Shown: piece after piece, positions 797-41,342 of the stretch
Position numbering within the stretch: position 1 is the first letter of the stretch
Layout of the letters: each line of letters begins with the position of its first letter
IMG/VR virus record: IMGVR_UViG_3300034104_005687
Coordinates: 124,001-188,000 of that record
Direction: 5' to 3' (one strand)
Length of the DNA: 64,000 bases
The notes under the pieces: model-generated
Databases searched by the model: none
What the model was told of the DNA's origin: nothing
Seen by the model: only the letters and a program-made list of their open reading frames with translations
Made by a program: the position numbers and the translations under genes

Positions 797-3700
797 ATGG
801 CTCTAGTATCACCCGGCGTAGAAGTAACAGTAATTGACGAAAGTCAATATATTCCAAGTGCTGTTAATTCAGTGCCTTACTTCTTGGTTGCAACTGCACA
901 AGACAAAGTATCCGCTGACGGTATTACCGTTGCTGCCGGTACATTGGCTGCCAACGCAAACAAAACTTATCTAATTACCAGCCAACGCGATTTGGCTGCA
1001 ACTTTTGGTGTACCGTTCTTCTACAACACCACCAATGGTACCCCGATCAACGGGTATGAACTCAATGAATACGGCTTGTTGGCTGCTTATTCTTCACTGG
1101 GTGTCACTAACCGTGCTTATGTTCAGCGTGTTGACATTGACTTGACAGAACTAACTGCCAGTTTGAATCGTCCAGTGGGTGAGCCTGCCAACAATACTAC
1201 TTGGCTTGACATATCTGAATCTGTGTGGGGGATCCAAGAATGGAACCAAACTACTGGAACATTCACTGTCAAAACTCCTATTGTGATCACTGACCCTGCT
1301 GAAGTTGTCGATGCTGATGCAGAAGATTACACACCACTATCATCGGTGGGCAGCATTGGCGACTATGCAATGGTTGCTATCGGAGAAATTATATTTGGCT
1401 ATTACAAAAATTCCAGCAACTCCTGGGTGCAAATTGGTGATGACGGGTGGAAAGACTCGTGGCCTACATTGACAGGTACCGCTAGCCCGTCTAGTCTGGT
1501 TGTAGGTTACAATCTTTTTATCAATGGCACACTTGTAGCAGTACCAAGCACCAACACTGTGGCTGGTTTGGCAGCAGCCATTAACGCAGCCACAATCCAG
1601 GGTGTTAGTGCAGAAGCAGTCAGCGGCAAACTTACACTGTACGCAGATTCAACATCTACCAGCGATGGTTCCAGTCTCAACGGTGGCGTAGTTGCAATTG
1701 AACCAGGCGGCAACAACGGTGCAGCACTGCTGACCAGTTTGGGGATCACAGCAGGTGATTATCGTGCCCCTATATACCTTCCGTCTTACAGTTATCAAGT
1801 ACCACGCTGGAGAACAACCGATGCTACACCGCGCCCCACAGGATCTGTATGGAACAACATGAGTGCTGCCAACAGCGGTATAAATGTAGTGATCAAAAAA
1901 TACAGTACAGTGCTGGGAGATTGGGTTGCACAAACCAGCAATGCATACATTGGAGACTTTGCGGCATTGAGCGGTCTTGACCCCAGTGGAGGCGGAAAAA
2001 ACATTCCAGTTGGCACCACGTATGTCAACGTTGATCCATATTTTTATGCAACTACTCCCAATCAAACTGCATCATACGAAATTCTAAGTCGATATGTATT
2101 GGGCGCAACAGTGGTCACTGGTACTGTGGCCAATCCAACTTTTGTTTCAGGAAATAGTTTTACTATTCGAGCCAGTCAAGCGTCAGCCACACCAACCTCA
2201 GTTCTTGGAACAGCAACGTTGGGCGGAACAACTCCAGCAGCTTTTGTTGCTGCGGTTAGTGCAGCTAACATACCTAATGTCAGTGCCAGTGTTAACTCAG
2301 CAGGAAACATTGTGTTGACACACAGTCAAGGCGGAACCATGGTAGTCGAGAATGTTATCGGAACGCCACTGACTGCTGCAGGATTTACGTTGGTTACTCC
2401 GTTGGTTCGTCAAGGTAGATTGTCGGCTACTCAACTAACATTGAGTAATTGGGTTGGTACACCTGAATTTACATACACAGCCAGCGACACTGCACCAGAT
2501 GTTGATCCAGCAGATGGACGACTGTGGTTCTACAGTTCTGTTAGCGATGTTGACATCATGATTCAGGACAATGGCACCTGGCAAGGCTATCAAAACGTTG
2601 TCAATGATGTTCGTGGTTTTGACCTCAGCGAGACCAACGCCAGCGGTCCTATCATTGCTGCCACAGCACCAACTACACAAAATGACGCCAGTGAAAGCCC
2701 ATTGCAATTTGGTGATCTTTGGATCGATTCCAGCGACCTAGAAAACTATCCTGCAATTTATCGTTGGCAAGCTGTTGCTGGAGAAAACCAATGGGTTTCA
2801 ATCGACACCACAGACCAGGTCACTGAAAATGGCGTGCTGTTTGCAGACGCACGTTGGGCCGGCAACGGAACTACTGATCCAATCAGCGATCCTTTCCCAA
2901 CTATCGAAAGCTTGTTGACCAGCAATTACCTGGATCTTGATGCACCTGATCCTGCACTGTATCCACAGGGCATGCTGTTGTTCAACACACGTCGTAGTGG
3001 CTACAACGTCAAGAGTTTCCAAGAAAACTATTTCAATGCCACGAGCTTCCCTGACGATACTCTACCTAGTGTGAAAAACACTTGGTTAACTGCCAGCGGC
3101 AACAAAGATGATGGCAGCATGTGGTCAGGACGTCAGGCACAACGCAAAATGATTGTGGCAGCATTGAAGTCAGGAATTGACACCAGTTTGAGCATTCGAG
3201 AAGAACAAGTTGACTTCAACTTGATTGCTACACCCGCATATCCTGAGCTTACTCCCAACATGATTGCACTCAGCAACGAGCGCAGCAACACATTGTTTGT
3301 GGTAGCAGATACTCCAATGCGACTGGATCCAAGTGGCACAAGTCTTGTGAACTGGGCTACCAACAACAATGGACTGGGATTGGTCACTGAAGACGGTCAG
3401 ATTGCAACCAGCAACTATGCTGGCGCATTCTACCCCAGCTGCCAGACCACAGACCTCAGCGGCAACACCGTGGTTGCTCCTCCAAGTCACATGATGGTAC
3501 GCACCATCCTGCGCAGCGATGCTGTAAGCTATCCATGGTTGGCTCCAGCTGGTACACGTCGTGGCGTGGTGGACAATGCACTGGCTATTGGTTACATCAA
3601 CGGCGCAACTGGCGAATTTGTGCAGTTGAGCATGGGACAAGCACTGCGTGACATCTTGTATGAACGCAACATCAACCCAATCACGTTTATTCCAGGTGTA

Positions 3701-4075
3701 GGTATCACCAACTTTGGTAACAAAACTACCACTGTGACTACCACCGCACTGGATCGTATCAACGTTGCACGACTGGTTGCGTTCTTGCGTGGACGACTGG
3801 AGCAGATTGGCAAGTTGTTCTTGTTTGAACCCAACGACGAAGTTACTCGTCAGGAAATCACCAACACTGTCAACAGCTTGATGATTGACCTGACAGCCAA
3901 GCGAGCAATTTACGACTACCTAGTGGTCTGCGACAACAGCAACAATACTCCAGCACGTATCGATCGAAACGAGCTATGGGTCGACATTGCCATTGAACCA
4001 GTGAAGGCTGTGGAATTTATCTATATTCCATTGCGTATCAAGAACACTGGTGAAATTTCTGGAGCAGCCGCTTAA
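797..4075 (+). CDS. gp18: contractile tail sheath protein
   Basis: N-terminal LVSPGVEVTVIDES. C-terminal YPWLAPAG..RG, INPI, GNKT, DRINVARL, LFEPND, IEPVKAVEFIYI. SD AAGGAA. Confidence 0.95.
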   Translation: MALVSPGVEVTVIDESQYIPSAVNSVPYFLVATAQDKVSADGITVAAGTLAANANKTYLITSQRDLAATFGVPFFYNTTNGTPINGYELNEYGLLAAYSSLGVTNRAYVQRVDIDLTELTASLNRPVGEPANNTTWLDISESVWGIQEWNQTTGTFTVKTPIVITDPAEVVDADAEDYTPLSSVGSIGDYAMVAIGEIIFGYYKNSSNSWVQIGDDGWKDSWPTLTGTASPSSLVVGYNLFINGTLVAVPSTNTVAGLAAAINAATIQGVSAEAVSGKLTLYADSTSTSDGSSLNGGVVAIEPGGNNGAALLTSLGITAGDYRAPIYLPSYSYQVPRWRTTDATPRPTGSVWNNMSAANSGINVVIKKYSTVLGDWVAQTSNAYIGDFAALSGLDPSGGGKNIPVGTTYVNVDPYFYATTPNQTASYEILSRYVLGATVVTGTVANPTFVSGNSFTIRASQASATPTSVLGTATLGGTTPAAFVAAVSAANIPNVSASVNSAGNIVLTHSQGGTMVVENVIGTPLTAAGFTLVTPLVRQGRLSATQLTLSNWVGTPEFTYTASDTAPDVDPADGRLWFYSSVSDVDIMIQDNGTWQGYQNVVNDVRGFDLSETNASGPIIAATAPTTQNDASESPLQFGDLWIDSSDLENYPAIYRWQAVAGENQWVSIDTTDQVTENGVLFADARWAGNGTTDPISDPFPTIESLLTSNYLDLDAPDPALYPQGMLLFNTRRSGYNVKSFQENYFNATSFPDDTLPSVKNTWLTASGNKDDGSMWSGRQAQRKMIVAALKSGIDTSLSIREEQVDFNLIATPAYPELTPNMIALSNERSNTLFVVADTPMRLDPSGTSLVNWATNNNGLGLVTEDGQIATSNYAGAFYPSCQTTDLSGNTVVAPPSHMMVRTILRSDAVSYPWLAPAGTRRGVVDNALAIGYINGATGEFVQLSMGQALRDILYERNINPITFIPGVGITNFGNKTTTVTTTALDRINVARLVAFLRGRLEQIGKLFLFEPNDEVTRQEITNTVNSLMIDLTAKRAIYDYLVVCDNSNNTPARIDRNELWVDIAIEPVKAVEFIYIPLRIKNTGEISGAAA

Positions 4076-34517: not shown

Positions 34518-35215
34518 ACTGTGCCTGTGTAATACACAGCAACGGCTATGACTGGACCTATGTTGACCGACTGTACAACATGTTGAGTCGTCAAATCACT
34601 GCTGGCATACGTTTTCATGTGTACACTGAAGCAGACCGATACGTTCCGCCACACATGATCAAGCACTGTCTTGAAGAATGGCCCGAAGTCAGAGGTCCCA
34701 AACGGTCTTGGTGGTACAAGATGCAGTTGTTCAATCCTGCACACTTTGGCGGAAATCTGCTGTATTTGGATCTGGACGTGGTAGTGTTCAACAGCCTTGA
34801 TTGGGTCACAGCATCCAACCCAGATTATTTTTGGACCATACGAGATTTCAGATATCTACAGCATACCTGTAGTTCCATGAATTCCAGCATGATGTGGTGG
34901 AATGTTGGTCAATATGCCTGGGTATGGGACCAGTTCTGCCTGGAATCTCGCGACACAGTGATACGGCGACACCATGGCGACCAAGACTACATCAACAGTG
35001 TGATCACACCAAAGCACAAACGTTTTTGGCCAGATCAGCATTTTCAAAGTTGGCGTTGGCAATGCCAAGAAGGCGGATACGATTTCCCGCGACGTCGACA
35101 TCGTGCTCCTGGTGCCGCGGCACACGTTGATCCTGATGCTAGTGTGATAGTATTTCACGGTCAACCAAAACCGCACCAAATCAATGATCCTATAGTGCAG
35201 GCACACTGGTGTTGA
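34478..35215 (+). CDS. GT-A fold glycosyltransferase-like (paralogue of 29441)
   Basis: RFHVYTE, WWYKMQLF, LYLDLDVV, NSSMMWW, GDQDY, VFHGQPKP. Confidence 0.65.
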   Translation: MAIKNRPIITGPIDCACVIHSNGYDWTYVDRLYNMLSRQITAGIRFHVYTEADRYVPPHMIKHCLEEWPEVRGPKRSWWYKMQLFNPAHFGGNLLYLDLDVVVFNSLDWVTASNPDYFWTIRDFRYLQHTCSSMNSSMMWWNVGQYAWVWDQFCLESRDTVIRRHHGDQDYINSVITPKHKRFWPDQHFQSWRWQCQEGGYDFPRRRHRAPGAAAHVDPDASVIVFHGQPKPHQINDPIVQAHWC

Positions 35216-35266
35216 CAAATTAATCCCAATTTGCTATAATAACAACATAGCAACAAAGGAGCCACC

Positions 35267-35470
35267 ATGAGCTACATCGTTTTCAAGCACAACAAAGAAT
35301 ACGGTCCACGCAAGGGATTGGAAGGTCCGTTTCACTACCCAAATGGTGCTGTACTGTACTATGATCCACGAGAAGGACAGTACTACGATCCTACTACCGA
35401 CTTCTATGTGCCGCACGACGAGGTTGCAGAACTGCAAAACAGCATCTTTGCCTTGTTGTCTAAACATTAA
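35267..35470 (+). CDS. small early protein with tandem YYDP motifs (OCRE-like)
   Basis: LYYDPREGQYYDPTTDFY. Has its own promoter and SD. Confidence 0.7.
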   Translation: MSYIVFKHNKEYGPRKGLEGPFHYPNGAVLYYDPREGQYYDPTTDFYVPHDEVAELQNSIFALLSKH

Positions 35471-35476
35471 GCAAAA

Positions 35477-35498
35477 AGTGTGGCTTTTTTGCCACACT
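35477..35498. promoter_or_regulatory. inverted repeat AGTGTGGC-T6-GCCACACT just upstream of the second -35
   Basis: Perfect 8-bp stem. Terminator or operator role is not resolved. Confidence 0.45.
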
Positions 35499-35564
35499 GT
35501 GCCCAGTTGACCGAATATTCCCATTTTGCTATAATATAGCATAGAGAAACAAAAAGGAGCCAAA

Positions 35565-35798
35565 ATGATACATCAAAATATACAAAAACTCATTAACGAT
35601 TATCAAGAGATTCTGGACCGAGATCCCATGGATCAGTCAGAAGATACTCCCAGTATTCTGACTAAATTTGCCCAAGCCTTGGCTCAAGAACTAGGCGAAA
35701 TTGTGGTAGCGAGTCCTTACATGGAAGGTACCCGCATGTACTTTGACGAGAAGATTGCTCGTTACGAAATCAAGAAGAGCGTGGGCCTTGCGGAATAA
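35565..35798 (+). CDS. small early hypothetical protein
   Basis: 77 aa with its own promoter and SD GGAG. Confidence 0.75.
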   Translation: MIHQNIQKLINDYQEILDRDPMDQSEDTPSILTKFAQALAQELGEIVVASPYMEGTRMYFDEKIARYEIKKSVGLAE

Positions 35799-35803
35799 CC
35801 GGG

Positions 35804-35856
35804 CTAAAAGTAGTACTTGAGTTTGCAGTTTTACCCCCTAAAACTAGTACTAAAGT
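35804..35856 (+). repeat. 19-nt imperfect direct repeat CTAAAA(G/C)TAGTACT(TG/AA)AGT, period 34 nt
   Basis: Copies at 35804-35822 and 35838-35856 in the largest intergenic gap of the early region. Confidence 0.7.
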
Positions 35857-35999
35857 ACACATTTTTCACTTCAAGGGCGTTTAATTTCCCTAGATGTTGC
35901 ACAAACGCATCAAAGCACACAAAAACAGCTTAAAACCGCGGTTGACCAAATATTCCCAATTTGCTATAATATAGCATAGAGAAACAAAAAGGAACAGTC

Positions 36000-36179
36000 A
36001 TGCAAAGATCCACAGCAATGGCCCAACTTGACAAAGAGTGTAAGTTTTTGGGCATGGAATTTTTTGAACTGATCAAAGACATTCAGATCAACGGCCGCAT
36101 GGTCTATAGCCAAAAGACTGTAGAAGCTTACCACAAATACATGGAAATTTACGCCATGGCCGCACAGATTGACCAATAA
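36000..36179 (+). CDS. small early hypothetical protein (59 aa, MQRSTAMAQLDKECK...)
   Basis: Not in the ORF track. Follows promoter 3 and SD AAGGAA, and its last codons (IDQ*) encode the next -35. Confidence 0.7.
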   Translation: MQRSTAMAQLDKECKFLGMEFFELIKDIQINGRMVYSQKTVEAYHKYMEIYAMAAQIDQ

Positions 36180-36225
36180 TTCCCAATTTGTTATAATACT
36201 TGTATAGTAACTAAAAGGAGCCAAC

Positions 36226-36621
36226 ATGCAGAACTGGACCGACAAGATCATTCATTGGAATCAACTGCCTGGAACAGAAGTCAAACGACTGCTGGCTACC
36301 TGGGGAATGACTCCTGAGCAGATTGCCAAGTATGACAAGAAGCATGGGTTTGCAAACTCTGCCTCCAAAGCTCAAGTGCCTGTGACAGCAGAAAAGGCTG
36401 TGAAACCCACACCAAAGCCTGCGGTTAAAAAGACAGTGGCCAAATCCACAGCCCGTCAAAAGCACACTGGCGCCGACGGTGCAATCAAGTTTGTAGAGCA
36501 TCGCAATCTCTACGTGGGGTTCTTTGGTGGTAAGGTGGTAGTAACCAAACGCACCGTAGATGCTTGTCGTGCCGTGTTGCTGGAACAGTTTGGAATCGAC
36601 GGTGTCAAGGTTGACGCTTAA
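36226..36621 (+). CDS. early hypothetical protein with Lys/Ala/Pro linker
   Basis: 131 aa with its own promoter and SD GGAG. Confidence 0.75.
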   Translation: MQNWTDKIIHWNQLPGTEVKRLLATWGMTPEQIAKYDKKHGFANSASKAQVPVTAEKAVKPTPKPAVKKTVAKSTARQKHTGADGAIKFVEHRNLYVGFFGGKVVVTKRTVDACRAVLLEQFGIDGVKVDA

Positions 36622-36670
36622 TTCCCAATTTGCTATAATATAATTTTAACGCACACTAAAGGAGCCAACC

Positions 36671-37690
36671 ATGAGTGCAATTCGCGTAGTAAACGGTACC
36701 TACCGTAACAAACCCGTCCGTAATCAAGAATTCTTTCTTGTGAGCGGTTTCCAATCCGGTGCCAAAGGTAACTATGTTACTGTTAAAAACAACGGCGCTT
36801 TCCCGAACTGCCCTGAAACGATTCGTATCAGTGTAGACAACATCTCTGATATTGAGTATACTAACGGCATGACTACAGAAAAACCCGCAGAGCCAATCCT
36901 GTCCCGTGCAACAGAAACTGATGAGCAAGCCATGGATCGTATCCGTGAGCGTTTTGACATCCTGCACGAAATGACCAAAGCCACTGTCAGCGGCGACATC
37001 CGTGCCATGATTGTGAGCGGCCCTCCTGGCGTGGGCAAGAGCTTTGGCGTTGAGCAAGAAATTGACAAGGCCACAATGTTCGACAAGCTGGCAGGCAAGC
37101 GACTGCGAGCCGAAGTTGTCAAAGGCAGTGCTACTCCTATCGGCCTGTATCAGACACTGTACAAGTACTCAGACGAGAATTGTGTTGTGGTGTTTGACGA
37201 CTGCGACAGCATTTTGCTGGATGACGTAGCTCTTAACTTGCTCAAGGGTGCTCTGGACTCAGGCAAGAAGCGCAAGATTTCCTGGTTGAGTGAATCCAGC
37301 AGCCTGCGTCGCGAAGGCATCCCGGACAGTTTTGAATTCAAAGGCAGTGCCATCTTTATCACCAACTTGAAGTTTGACAAGATGAAATCGCAGAAACTGC
37401 GGGACCACTTGGATGCATTGCAAAGCCGATGCCACTACTTGGACTTGACCTTGGACACCATGCGTGACAAGATCTTGCGTATCAAGCAAATTGCCAAAGA
37501 CGGCGTGTTGTTTGCGGACTACGACTTTGCACCCGAAGTGCAAGACGAGATCATTGACTTTATGAATGTGAATCAGGATCGACTGCGTGAAATGAGCTTG
37601 CGTATGGCAATCAAGATTGCAGACTTGCGCAAGATGAGTATGCTGAACTGGAAGCGGTTGGCAGAGACTACTTGCATGAAGAGTGCCTAA
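36671..37690 (+). CDS. AAA+ ATPase (early)
   Basis: Walker A GPPGVGKS, Walker B VVVFDDCD, FITN sensor, ALQSR arginine finger. Confidence 0.85.
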   Translation: MSAIRVVNGTYRNKPVRNQEFFLVSGFQSGAKGNYVTVKNNGAFPNCPETIRISVDNISDIEYTNGMTTEKPAEPILSRATETDEQAMDRIRERFDILHEMTKATVSGDIRAMIVSGPPGVGKSFGVEQEIDKATMFDKLAGKRLRAEVVKGSATPIGLYQTLYKYSDENCVVVFDDCDSILLDDVALNLLKGALDSGKKRKISWLSESSSLRREGIPDSFEFKGSAIFITNLKFDKMKSQKLRDHLDALQSRCHYLDLTLDTMRDKILRIKQIAKDGVLFADYDFAPEVQDEIIDFMNVNQDRLREMSLRMAIKIADLRKMSMLNWKRLAETTCMKSA

Positions 37691-37797
37691 TGAGCAGTGA
37701 CAAGGCCTTCTATGGAACCATACTTGCCATGATGGCCTTGTTGTTTGGACATCCTGTTGTGGCTTTGTTTATTTTTTTGATTGCGGTGGTGTTATGA
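37690..37797 (+). CDS. 35-aa membrane micro-protein
   Basis: MSSDKAFYGTILAMMALLFGHPVVALFIFLIAVVL, with TAATG and ATGA coupling. Confidence 0.65.
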   Translation: MSSDKAFYGTILAMMALLFGHPVVALFIFLIAVVL

Positions 37798-37946
37798 GCG
37801 TATGGGTCATTTTGAATATTTTTCTTGCATGGCTCATGCTGAAATGGGCCAAGCGTGATTTTGAAGCTGGGCACAATGGCCTGGGTTGGACCAGCATTGT
37901 GTTTAGTGCCTGGAATGCCGCAGCCGCGGCCAATGCAATTTTTTAA
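37794..37946 (+). CDS. 50-aa two-helix membrane micro-protein
   Basis: MSVWVILNIFLAWLMLKWAKRDFEAGHNGLGWTSIVFSAWNAAAAANAIF, ATGA overlap. Confidence 0.65.
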   Translation: MSVWVILNIFLAWLMLKWAKRDFEAGHNGLGWTSIVFSAWNAAAAANAIF

Positions 37947-37955
37947 GGAATATAC

Positions 37956-38084
37956 ATGACAGTAAAATACATTGCTAATCGTGCAGGTGATATTACACTG
38001 CCTTGGGAACCAGGTCTGTTGGAATGGTTGATTGCAAGGTACCCGCACTCAGGATATGAAATAAAGGAATTGACAAATGTTTGA
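37956..38084 (+). CDS. 42-aa hypothetical protein
   Basis: MTVKYIANRAGDITLPWEPGLLEWLIARYPHSGYEIKELTNV, SD AAGGAA. Confidence 0.6.
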   Translation: MTVKYIANRAGDITLPWEPGLLEWLIARYPHSGYEIKELTNV

Positions 38085-38178
38085 AATTTGGGATGGCGAT
38101 TTGTTTTTGTTTGTCGTTGATACTCGGCACGAAGCAGACGAACAACAGCAACAGGGTTTTCGAGTGGTAGCAAAGTAG
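38077..38178 (+). CDS. 33-aa hypothetical protein
   Basis: MFEIWDGDLFLFVVDTRHEADEQQQQGFRVVAK, SD AAGGAA. Confidence 0.55.
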   Translation: MFEIWDGDLFLFVVDTRHEADEQQQQGFRVVAK

Positions 38179-38204: not shown

Positions 38205-38236
38205 CCTGGGCATTACACGGTTGGCTCCGGCCCAGG
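38205..38236 (+). ncRNA. candidate antisense RNA element: 7-bp stem whose 18-nt loop contains GGTTGGCTCC
   Basis: CCTGGGC/GCCCAGG stem. The loop decamer is the reverse complement of GGAGCCAACC at 36661-36670. Function is inferred only. Confidence 0.35.
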
Positions 38237-38242
38237 CTTTAT

Positions 38243-38275
38243 AGTAGGTACCCCTAAAAAGGTACCTACTTTTTT
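38243..38275 (+). terminator. intrinsic terminator ending the early operon
   Basis: AGTAGGTACC-8 nt-GGTACCTACT perfect 10-bp stem followed by a T tract. Confidence 0.85.
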
Positions 38276-38302
38276 GACTTGATAGTCACAACAATATATA
38301 CT
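38274..38302 (+). promoter_or_regulatory. sigma70 promoter TTGACT-17-TATACT
   Basis: The ATG at 38309 follows 6 nt after the -10. Confidence 0.75.
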
Positions 38303-38308
38303 ACAGTT

Positions 38309-39175
38309 ATGAGCATTTTGTATATTGAGCTTGAAGATCTGACATTGCAATTTCATGTGTTGGCCACACCTGTAGCAGAGCTGTGGCAAGAGAGAATGAG
38401 TCAACGCCATGCTTGGCCCTTGGATCACCCTCGACGTTTCTACGGTTTTGACAGTGCCAAAACAGAAGCAGATCGTGCATTGACAGAAATTAATCGTTGT
38501 GTAACCATCATCAATCAGTACCAGCACATTGCAGACCGTGCATTGACAGATGTGCATGATCAAGACACCCTGAACTATCTGCACAATATCTTTGAACGAT
38601 ATCACGGCCTGTTGGATCAGCAGAACAGTGAATACTGGATGTCTGCTCCTGATTGGGTTCGGACCGCACTGGCTGATCTCAACTTGGCTGTACACCGATG
38701 TGAAACTGCTCAGTCTGCACCGACCCCTAGGCTGGTGTGTACCTGGTATGGACAACCCAAACAACACACCTTGCCTCTGACTGTACAACAACAATACGGT
38801 ACTGTGAACCCTCCCTGGGGTAGTGTGTGTTTGAACTATTGCGAAATAGGCAAGACTCTAGAAGATCTTGCCAGAGACAATGATCGCTACATTGGAGATG
38901 ATGCATTTCGTCCATTCTCGTACTACAGCAGTGACTTTGTGGTGAGATTTTTTGAATACGACACACCAGCACTTGACAAAACCCATGCAAGTATGCAACA
39001 ATACTACTCAACACACCGTGAGTTTTTTCACAATCGTGGGTTTGAATCTTTTGACAACACGCAACTACAACCATTGCGGTTTCCGGTGGCACAGCTGATA
39101 GAGACCATGCCACGAGATCAATTGTTGCAGGAAATAGCAGTCAGACAACAAGTGACAAATATACATATACAATGA
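38309..39175 (+). CDS. hypothetical protein
   Basis: Long ORF coupled to uvsW, with an internal ADRALT(E/D) duplication. Start moved from 38279 because the promoter lies inside that extension. Confidence 0.7.
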   Translation: MSILYIELEDLTLQFHVLATPVAELWQERMSQRHAWPLDHPRRFYGFDSAKTEADRALTEINRCVTIINQYQHIADRALTDVHDQDTLNYLHNIFERYHGLLDQQNSEYWMSAPDWVRTALADLNLAVHRCETAQSAPTPRLVCTWYGQPKQHTLPLTVQQQYGTVNPPWGSVCLNYCEIGKTLEDLARDNDRYIGDDAFRPFSYYSSDFVVRFFEYDTPALDKTHASMQQYYSTHREFFHNRGFESFDNTQLQPLRFPVAQLIETMPRDQLLQEIAVRQQVTNIHIQ

Positions 39176-40641: not shown

Positions 40642-41342
40642 AAATAATTGTATGCGGTGATAGTTTTTGTGCAAGCAGTAACCAAGAAAGTCTGCTGCCT
40701 GGACCACGAGCTCACTTTAGTCAGATACTGGAAGATCAGTACGGATACCAAGTGCTGAATCTTGCTCACGGTGCTATGAGTAATACAGCTATCTGGTTTC
40801 AAATTGAGCAAGCAACAAAGCTCAATCCTGACATAATTGTTTACAATAGAACATGGAGCAGCAGACTAGATTTGTATGTAAGAGATGCATACTATAATAC
40901 CACTGACAGTCTAAAAAATTTTATCTACTACGATCCTTGTTTTTCTAGTTCGCATACACCTTACGTTGGAGGTGTAGGTGCTGATGACAATAGCAAAGAA
41001 GGAAGTATGATTATCAGCACCGGAAGATTGAACATGGAAAATAGCCCGTTTTTTAAGCTGACCAAAGAACAAATAACTGCGGTTAATTTATATTTCAAAT
41101 ATCTGTACAATGATACTTTACAGACACAAACAGATCGGTGGATTTTTGAATATTGGGAAAGTCGCTGCGAAAAGCAAGGCATAAAAACTTTGTGTTTCAA
41201 CGACGACGATATTGGAGCTCCAGCTTACAAATTTTCAGAATCCAACCGAGAATACGATTCCCCGTTTCACACTGATCGAGCTACGCAAGAAATAGTTGCT
41301 GCCAAGATACATTGTAAAATTGTTGACAGTTTGAAACAATGA
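40638..41342 (+). CDS. SGNH/GDSL-like protein
   Basis: IIVCGDSF, NLAHGAMSN, C-terminal DSPFHT. Confidence 0.5.
   Translation: MKIIVCGDSFCASSNQESLLPGPRAHFSQILEDQYGYQVLNLAHGAMSNTAIWFQIEQATKLNPDIIVYNRTWSSRLDLYVRDAYYNTTDSLKNFIYYDPCFSSSHTPYVGGVGADDNSKEGSMIISTGRLNMENSPFFKLTKEQITAVNLYFKYLYNDTLQTQTDRWIFEYWESRCEKQGIKTLCFNDDDIGAPAYKFSESNREYDSPFHTDRATQEIVAAKIHCKIVDSLKQ

Follow-up and report, generated by a model that had tools for sequence, protein, structure and literature searches.

The analyzed stretch of DNA (the window, 64,000 nucleotides) comprises bases 124001–188000 of the IMG/VR virus record IMGVR_UViG_3300034104_005687, a single record of 349,369 bp with a G+C content of 45.7%, which CheckV estimates to be 97% complete. 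Its DNA occurs in at least 16 lake-water metagenome runs, so the record represents an uncultured freshwater jumbo phage; a search of the phage collection returned no near-identical record. The region 35212–36670 holds five near-identical sigma-70-type promoter–leader cassettes (TTGAC..TTCCCAATTTGCTATAAT..AAGGAGCC..ATG), each driving one small gene and some preceded by a terminator (for example, at 35475–35500), which resemble the mobile promoter–early stem-loop cassettes of T4-type phages. The last of these drives an AAA+ ATPase gene, which is followed by four small open reading frames, a hairpin, an intrinsic terminator, and a new promoter that precedes a 288-aa gene and a UvsW-type helicase. 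The features of this predicted transcription unit, all on the + strand and numbered from the first base of the window, are as follows.

36611–36639 (+): sigma-70-type early promoter of the ATPase unit, with −35 TTGACG at 36611–36616 and −10 TATAAT at 36634–36639; the inferred, unmapped start near 36646 gives a 5′ UTR of about 25 nt.
36661–36673 (+): target site in the ATPase leader, consisting of the Shine–Dalgarno sequence plus spacer GGAGCCAACC (36661–36670) and the start codon ATG (36671–36673).
36671–37690 (+): AAA+ ATPase gene, 339 aa, the putative regulated gene.
37690–38178 (+): four small ORFs (37690–37797, 37794–37946, 37956–38084, and 38077–38178), variable cargo of the same unit.
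38205–38236 (+): anti-leader hairpin, with a 7-bp stem (CCTGGGC at 38205–38211 with GCCCAGG at 38230–38236) and the 18-nt loop ATTACACGGTTGGCTCCG.
38219–38228 (+): anti-leader seed GGTTGGCTCC, the exact antisense of 36661–36670.
38237–38242 (+): U-rich single-stranded linker CUUUAU between the hairpin and the terminator.
38243–38275 (+): intrinsic terminator, with a 10-bp stem and an 8-nt loop (38243–38270) and a run of six T ending at 38275.
38274–38311 (+): next promoter, overlapping the T run, with −35 TTGACT at 38274–38279 and −10 TATACT at 38297–38302, followed 6 nt later by the ATG at 38309; it marks the end of the ATPase unit, and the same arrangement is present in most relatives.

The ATPase belongs to phrog_1250, a family of unknown function, and has a weak DnaC-like match. 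Homologues occur in 1308 phage records, the closest named relatives being PA5oct-like phages (Pseudomonas phage PA5oct, 41% protein identity), while sequence and profile searches of the PDB returned no relative, and an AlphaFold model built from a shallow alignment was too poor (pLDDT 65) to be used for a structural search. The four small ORFs gave no family hits, and in relatives this stretch is anything from absent to about 2.1 kb long; the last of them (38077–38178), a 33-codon ORF (MFEIWDGDLFLF...) directly before the hairpin, has recognizable versions that precede the element in many relatives, including ones whose other cargo differs. The promoter is conserved upstream of the ATPase gene in relatives, and a CGCACAC motif upstream of the Shine–Dalgarno sequence (36650–36657), outside the pairing region, is conserved in the ATPase 5′ UTR across the class A and class B relatives described below. 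The promoter at 38274–38311 also exemplifies what looks like a second class of promoter and start site in this phage, in which the −10 hexamer is followed 4–8 nt later by the ATG of a long ORF, so that the transcripts would have no leader and no Shine–Dalgarno sequence; further examples lie at 41323, 43634, and about nine more places in the genome. A promoter-like site at about 36832–36872, inside the ATPase gene, is likewise followed 6 nt later by an in-frame ATG (TTGACA-N17-TATACT-N6-ATG in relatives, with TAGACA as the −35 in the window), and might give a leaderless 274-aa form of the ATPase that would escape control at the leader, or may only reflect the protein sequence. The window contains no tRNAs, and no Rfam 15 covariance model reaches its gathering score on either strand.

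The original prediction had noted that the loop of the hairpin is the exact antisense of the leader directly before the ATPase ATG, and every sequence statement it made was confirmed when read directly. The seed at 38219–38228 is the exact reverse complement of the leader at 36661–36670, which abuts the ATG at 36671, and after one A:C mismatch, the U and G of the start codon can pair with A38217 and C38216. The neighboring leaders GGAGCCAAC (36217), GGAGCCAA (35556), and GGAGCCA (35258) match the loop over 9, 8, and 7 nt, and the hairpin is the last structure before the terminator, from which it is separated by 6 nt. Within this genome alone, however, the case is only modest, as the match was noticed after the fact, the 10-mer occurs three times on the + strand and twice on the − strand of the 349-kb genome, and a scan of all predicted terminators for 9-mers complementary to nearby start regions returned about ten other hits that look random and, on inspection, lie in coding sequence at false terminators; no second such element was found in this genome. 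A 13-nt exact complement of the ATPase leader including its ATG (CATGGTTGGCTCC, 3534–3546) lies in the + strand mRNA of the 1092-aa sheath-like gene (797–4075), but this site encodes a conserved PWLAP motif and, in four relatives with other leader classes, does not follow the leader, although one of them happens to read GGTTAGCTCC; this second site was therefore rejected as a coincidence.

Comparison with relatives, which had been set beforehand as a test of the idea, removes this doubt. Four scans of IMG/VR with ATPase proteins returned several hundred relatives, from which 144 distinct loci with ATPase identities of 74–100% were extracted (numbered with the prefix L below), and in 132 of these a terminator lies in the DNA examined. 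Of the 132, 128 have at least 7 nt and 114 have at least 9 nt of exact Watson–Crick complement between the ATPase leader (−16 to +3) and the 55 nt before a terminator downstream of the ATPase gene, whereas the chance expectation for 9 nt or more is about 0.002 per locus. In most loci (class A), the loop GGTTGGCTCCG and the leader GGAGCCAAC(C/T/A) are both invariant, while everything around them varies. In the variant classes, the leader is replaced as a block together with the 3′ element, and at least ten different matched pairs exist, which are listed with the leader first and the 3′ element second.

Class A: GGAGCCAACC and GGTTGGCTCC.
Class A2: CGGAGCCA and GGCTCCG.
Class B: GGGCTAGTAA and TTACTAGCCC.
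Class B2: GGGCTAGAAA and TTTCTAGCCC.
Class C: GGAGTTGGC and GCCAACTCC.
Class D: (CA)GGAGCTAA(C) and GTTAGCTCC(TG).
Class D2: GGAGCGAAA and TTTCGCTCC.
Class G: TGGAGCAACA and TGTTGCTCCA.
Loci L160/L214: GGAGCAA and TTGCTCC.
Class H: ACACGGA and TCCGTGT.

Classes B and B2 differ by a single compensatory switch (GGGCTAG-T-AA/TT-A-CTAGCCC versus GGGCTAG-A-AA/TT-T-CTAGCCC), and in class B the Shine–Dalgarno sequence itself has changed (GGAG to GGGC), with the matching change in the loop. With ten class representatives, none of 500,000 random re-pairings of leaders and elements reaches the observed summed match length (88 nt) or duplex energy (−176 kcal/mol), and with eight classes, exhaustive permutation shows that 2 of 40,320 pairings reach the length and only the true pairing reaches the energy. 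The complementarity is weak or absent in some lineages, being only 7 nt in class E, L160/L214, and L251, and 5+3 nt with a bulge in class F, while L229 has no clear match. On an ATPase protein tree, the variant classes are nested at several places among class A, with class D at three places; matched pairs have therefore been replaced or moved repeatedly and stayed matched. In L257, L262, and L270, a second anti-SD-like stretch, TTTCTCCTTTTT, lies about 25 nt upstream of the hairpin beside the usual loop seed and complements AAAAAGGAG of the same leader, and many class A relatives have CCCTCC at the same place. Among more distant relatives, PA5oct has, directly after the homologous gene (2640–2680), a hairpin whose 3′ arm (ATGCTACT) complements 8 nt of that gene's own leader (GGAGTAGCAT), a leader that resembles the class F leader of the lake clade; this could be a distant counterpart of the element, although no judgement is possible without covariation. 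Nothing comparable was found in Vibrio phage D506, which likewise cannot be judged without covariation.

The element is an RNA structure of the + strand. In an alignment of 61 distinct class A elements, all 7 pairs of the hairpin stem show changes on both sides and 97.9% of cells are paired, and in the terminator stem, 5 of 9 pairs show changes on both sides and 100% of cells are paired; none of 500 shuffles reaches the observed values, and sliding the partners destroys the signal. The U–G and G–U wobbles that occur in the hairpin stem would be mismatches on the other strand. The hairpin of the window is read from the minimum free energy fold; the element folds at −31 kcal/mol (z = −2.9), and the free leader is predicted to be essentially unstructured. 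The seed is presented in two ways: in classes A, B, B2, and C it sits in the apical loop of a 7–9-bp hairpin, and in classes D to H it sits in the single strand just 5′ of a different hairpin, with a mean unpaired probability of 0.41–0.93. In all classes, a U-rich linker and a U-tailed terminator follow, and in the class A alignment the UUU of the linker (T44–T46) is invariant or nearly invariant; the linker and U tail are compatible with Hfq binding but prove nothing, and describing the linker as an Hfq-type binding module is an inference from analogy with sRNAs. That two architectures present the same antisense argues for function rather than a shared DNA site.

A DNA-level explanation, namely a 10-bp inverted repeat flanking the ATPase cassette (recombination or transposition ends, or sites for a DNA-binding protein) or a ribosome-binding site for a minus-strand gene, was considered because the two copies are an inverted repeat, and because on the minus strand the loop reads GGAGCCAACC followed by a start codon, with a 54-codon frame running from 38213 to 38049. 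This explanation is very unlikely and was rejected, as the stem wobbles fit only the + strand RNA, the complementary block slides around the Shine–Dalgarno sequence between classes, the sequence upstream of the hairpin is not homologous among relatives, so that no minus-strand protein is conserved, class B has no minus-strand start codon, and the ATPase gene is in a syntenic place throughout; the segment was not seen inverted or excised precisely at the repeats in any of the 144 loci.

The original prediction further proposed that a 3′UTR-derived sRNA, or a long-range cis pairing, switches off translation of the early cassettes once the operon is fully transcribed, acting as an RNA timer for early genes, and this interpretation is supported only in part. 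The loop–leader complementarity is a selected RNA–RNA interaction between the 3′ end of the unit and a ribosome-binding leader, as either form of the proposal predicts, and the conserved CCAACC after GGAG, whose CCAA had been noted as a puzzle, is explained by pairing with the loop rather than with 16S rRNA. A general shut-off of early cassettes with GGAGCC leaders is not supported. In this genome, the loop also matches 9 nt at 36217 and at window coordinate 155041 (outside the 64-kb window, on the same contig), and 8 nt at 35556 and at three further leaders outside the window, and GGAGCC is the commonest continuation of GGAG at start sites (17 of 95). However, where the ATPase leader and the 3′ element have changed, neighboring early leaders have not followed; only 8 of 149 other early leaders in class A genomes match the loop over 8 nt or more, none match their own element over 7 nt or more in class B or D genomes, and GGAGCCA leaders also occur in genomes whose element is different. 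The GGAGCC shared by the cassettes is best explained by their being repeats of one another, and the general reading is unlikely. The selected target is the ATPase leader alone; the 9-nt match at 36217 may be a secondary target, but nothing shows selection for it.

In the window and in most relatives, leader and element lie in one predicted unit, and in 123 of the 128 loci the first terminator after the ATPase gene carries the element, at a distance that varies from under 50 nt to 2.1 kb with unrelated cargo in between. This arrangement is consistent with an element that acts only in cis, folding back on the leader of the same mRNA molecule once the 3′ end is made and closing that molecule to further initiation without any separate sRNA. 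In L041, L047, L063, and L064, however, a strong terminator and a fresh early promoter, belonging to an inserted promoter–leader cassette, lie directly after the ATPase stop codon, and the element lies 1–1.2 kb further on, at the end of the next unit, yet still matches the ATPase leader in both class A and class B genomes. Terminator read-through could restore cis action in these four loci. The layout of hairpin, U-rich linker, and U-tailed terminator is that of a free sRNA, and the upstream flank is non-homologous coding or intergenic DNA among relatives, with no conserved promoter of its own, although this rests on sequence only. A purely cis mechanism thus remains possible but is the less favored view.

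Taken together, the best explanation is that the roughly 70-nt 3′ end of the ATPase unit carries an accessible antisense of the ATPase ribosome-binding site, which base-pairs with the Shine–Dalgarno-to-start region of the ATPase mRNA (about −21.8 kcal/mol for the pair in the window) and most likely blocks 30S binding, so that ATPase synthesis would be limited once the unit has been fully transcribed, as post-transcriptional negative feedback or delayed shut-off. The active form is judged most likely to be an sRNA-like fragment acting in trans, while pairing within the same mRNA molecule may occur as well or instead, and a probability of roughly 0.7 is assigned to this reading. The analysis itself establishes the two sequences, the structure and its conservation, and the covariation of leader and element, with the selection for pairing that it implies, whereas it is inferred that the unit is early, that the pairing represses and acts as a timer, and that a fragment is released by processing and acts in trans, and any chaperone requirement would likewise be an inference. 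As the host is an uncultured lake bacterium, RNase E and Hfq cannot be assumed, and family searches of the phage genome returned no Hfq or ProQ hit. Two freshwater metatranscriptome runs hold assembled contigs of relatives at about 90% identity that begin in the promoter–leader region and cover the ATPase gene (36651–37690), so that the clade appears in RNA libraries, though DNA carry-over cannot be excluded; these contigs show no transcript ends and do not cover the element, and a run labeled RNA but probably DNA covers it once, so that these data neither support nor refute the model.

Covering a Shine–Dalgarno sequence could also protect or activate rather than repress, for example by shielding the GGAG of the leader from an endonuclease or by stabilizing the mRNA through joining its ends. 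Pairing of the 5′ and 3′ UTRs stabilizes the hbs mRNA of Bacillus subtilis (PMC5737220), and T4-type phages have a nuclease, RegB, that cuts GGAG in early leaders. This alternative appears improbable, as the duplex covers the Shine–Dalgarno sequence up to the start codon, which excludes the ribosome, and the free leader is predicted to be essentially unstructured, leaving nothing to relieve; no RegB family match was found in the genome, though that search had no positive control.

Both forms of the proposed mechanism have precedents in bacteria. The autoregulatory 3′UTR-derived sRNAs OppZ and CarZ of Vibrio cholerae (Hoyos et al. 2020, PMC7398697) lie at the 3′ end of an operon, share its terminator, and are complementary to the translation initiation region of a gene of the same operon, with negative feedback as the outcome expected here as well. 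The element described here agrees in position, with the terminator of its unit shared, and in its 10–11 nt of exact complement to the SD-to-ATG region, but it is found in a phage, its seed sits in a hairpin loop in most lineages, its target is the first gene of the unit, and the evidence is evolutionary covariation and not experiment. In the icaR mRNA of Staphylococcus aureus (Ruiz de los Mozos et al. 2013, PMC3868564), a pyrimidine-rich anti-SD motif in the 3′ UTR pairs with the Shine–Dalgarno region of its own mRNA and blocks initiation. An anti-SD motif complementary to the leader is likewise present here, but the icaR duplex is an RNase III substrate, whereas the duplex here is only 7–11 bp, which is short for RNase III, so that icaR-type cleavage is unlikely, and the element stays matched even where a terminator and promoter separate it from the target gene, which suggests trans action. 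Anti-SD-like sequences hundreds of nucleotides from the ribosome-binding site have also been shown to pair with it within one mRNA in vivo and to inhibit initiation (Gill et al. 2025 preprint, PMC12697547); such sequences are generally selected against in genes, while here one is positively maintained, extended beyond the SD core into the spacer, and co-evolves with its target. The T4 RegA repressor gives post-transcriptional shut-off of early and replication genes at the ribosome-binding site, and a homologue is annotated beside the ATPase homologue in Vibrio phage D506; the gene neighborhood, with a UvsW helicase downstream, is T4-related. RegA, however, is a protein acting on many mRNAs, whereas here an RNA would act on one, and no RegA family match was found in this genome, in a search without a positive control. 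Antisense RNAs that start pairing by loop contacts (CopA/CopT, RNAI/RNAII, Sok/hok) likewise present the seed in an apical hairpin loop, but they are transcribed from the opposite strand of their target, whereas this one is encoded 1.5 kb away on the same strand.

A more speculative possibility, considered unlikely but of great interest if true, is that the anti-leader RNA acts in trans and also across genomes, silencing the ATPase of a rival related phage in a co-infected cell if the leaders match. In this view, the many discrete "lock and key" alleles would reflect diversifying selection for escape and orthogonality, and not mere drift with compensation. The idea is prompted by the replacement of whole 5–7-nt blocks, even within the Shine–Dalgarno sequence, by the scattering of alleles over the ATPase tree, and by the presence of different alleles in the same samples, as judged from contig names; none of this is evidence for conflict, but none excludes it.

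Regulatory RNAs of phages are largely unexplored (PMC11512511), and a search of the literature collection consulted turned up no phage case of a 3′-end element that controls the ribosome-binding site of its own operon. The many matched allele pairs from an abundant, uncultured clade of lake jumbo phages provide unusually clean natural genetic evidence, showing that such circuits can be found and tested from metagenomes alone, and the natural pairs are ready-made orthogonal sets for reporter tests and possibly for synthetic regulation. The result also explains why a leader sequence beyond the Shine–Dalgarno sequence is conserved, and suggests that the dosage of this widespread phage AAA+ ATPase of unknown function matters.
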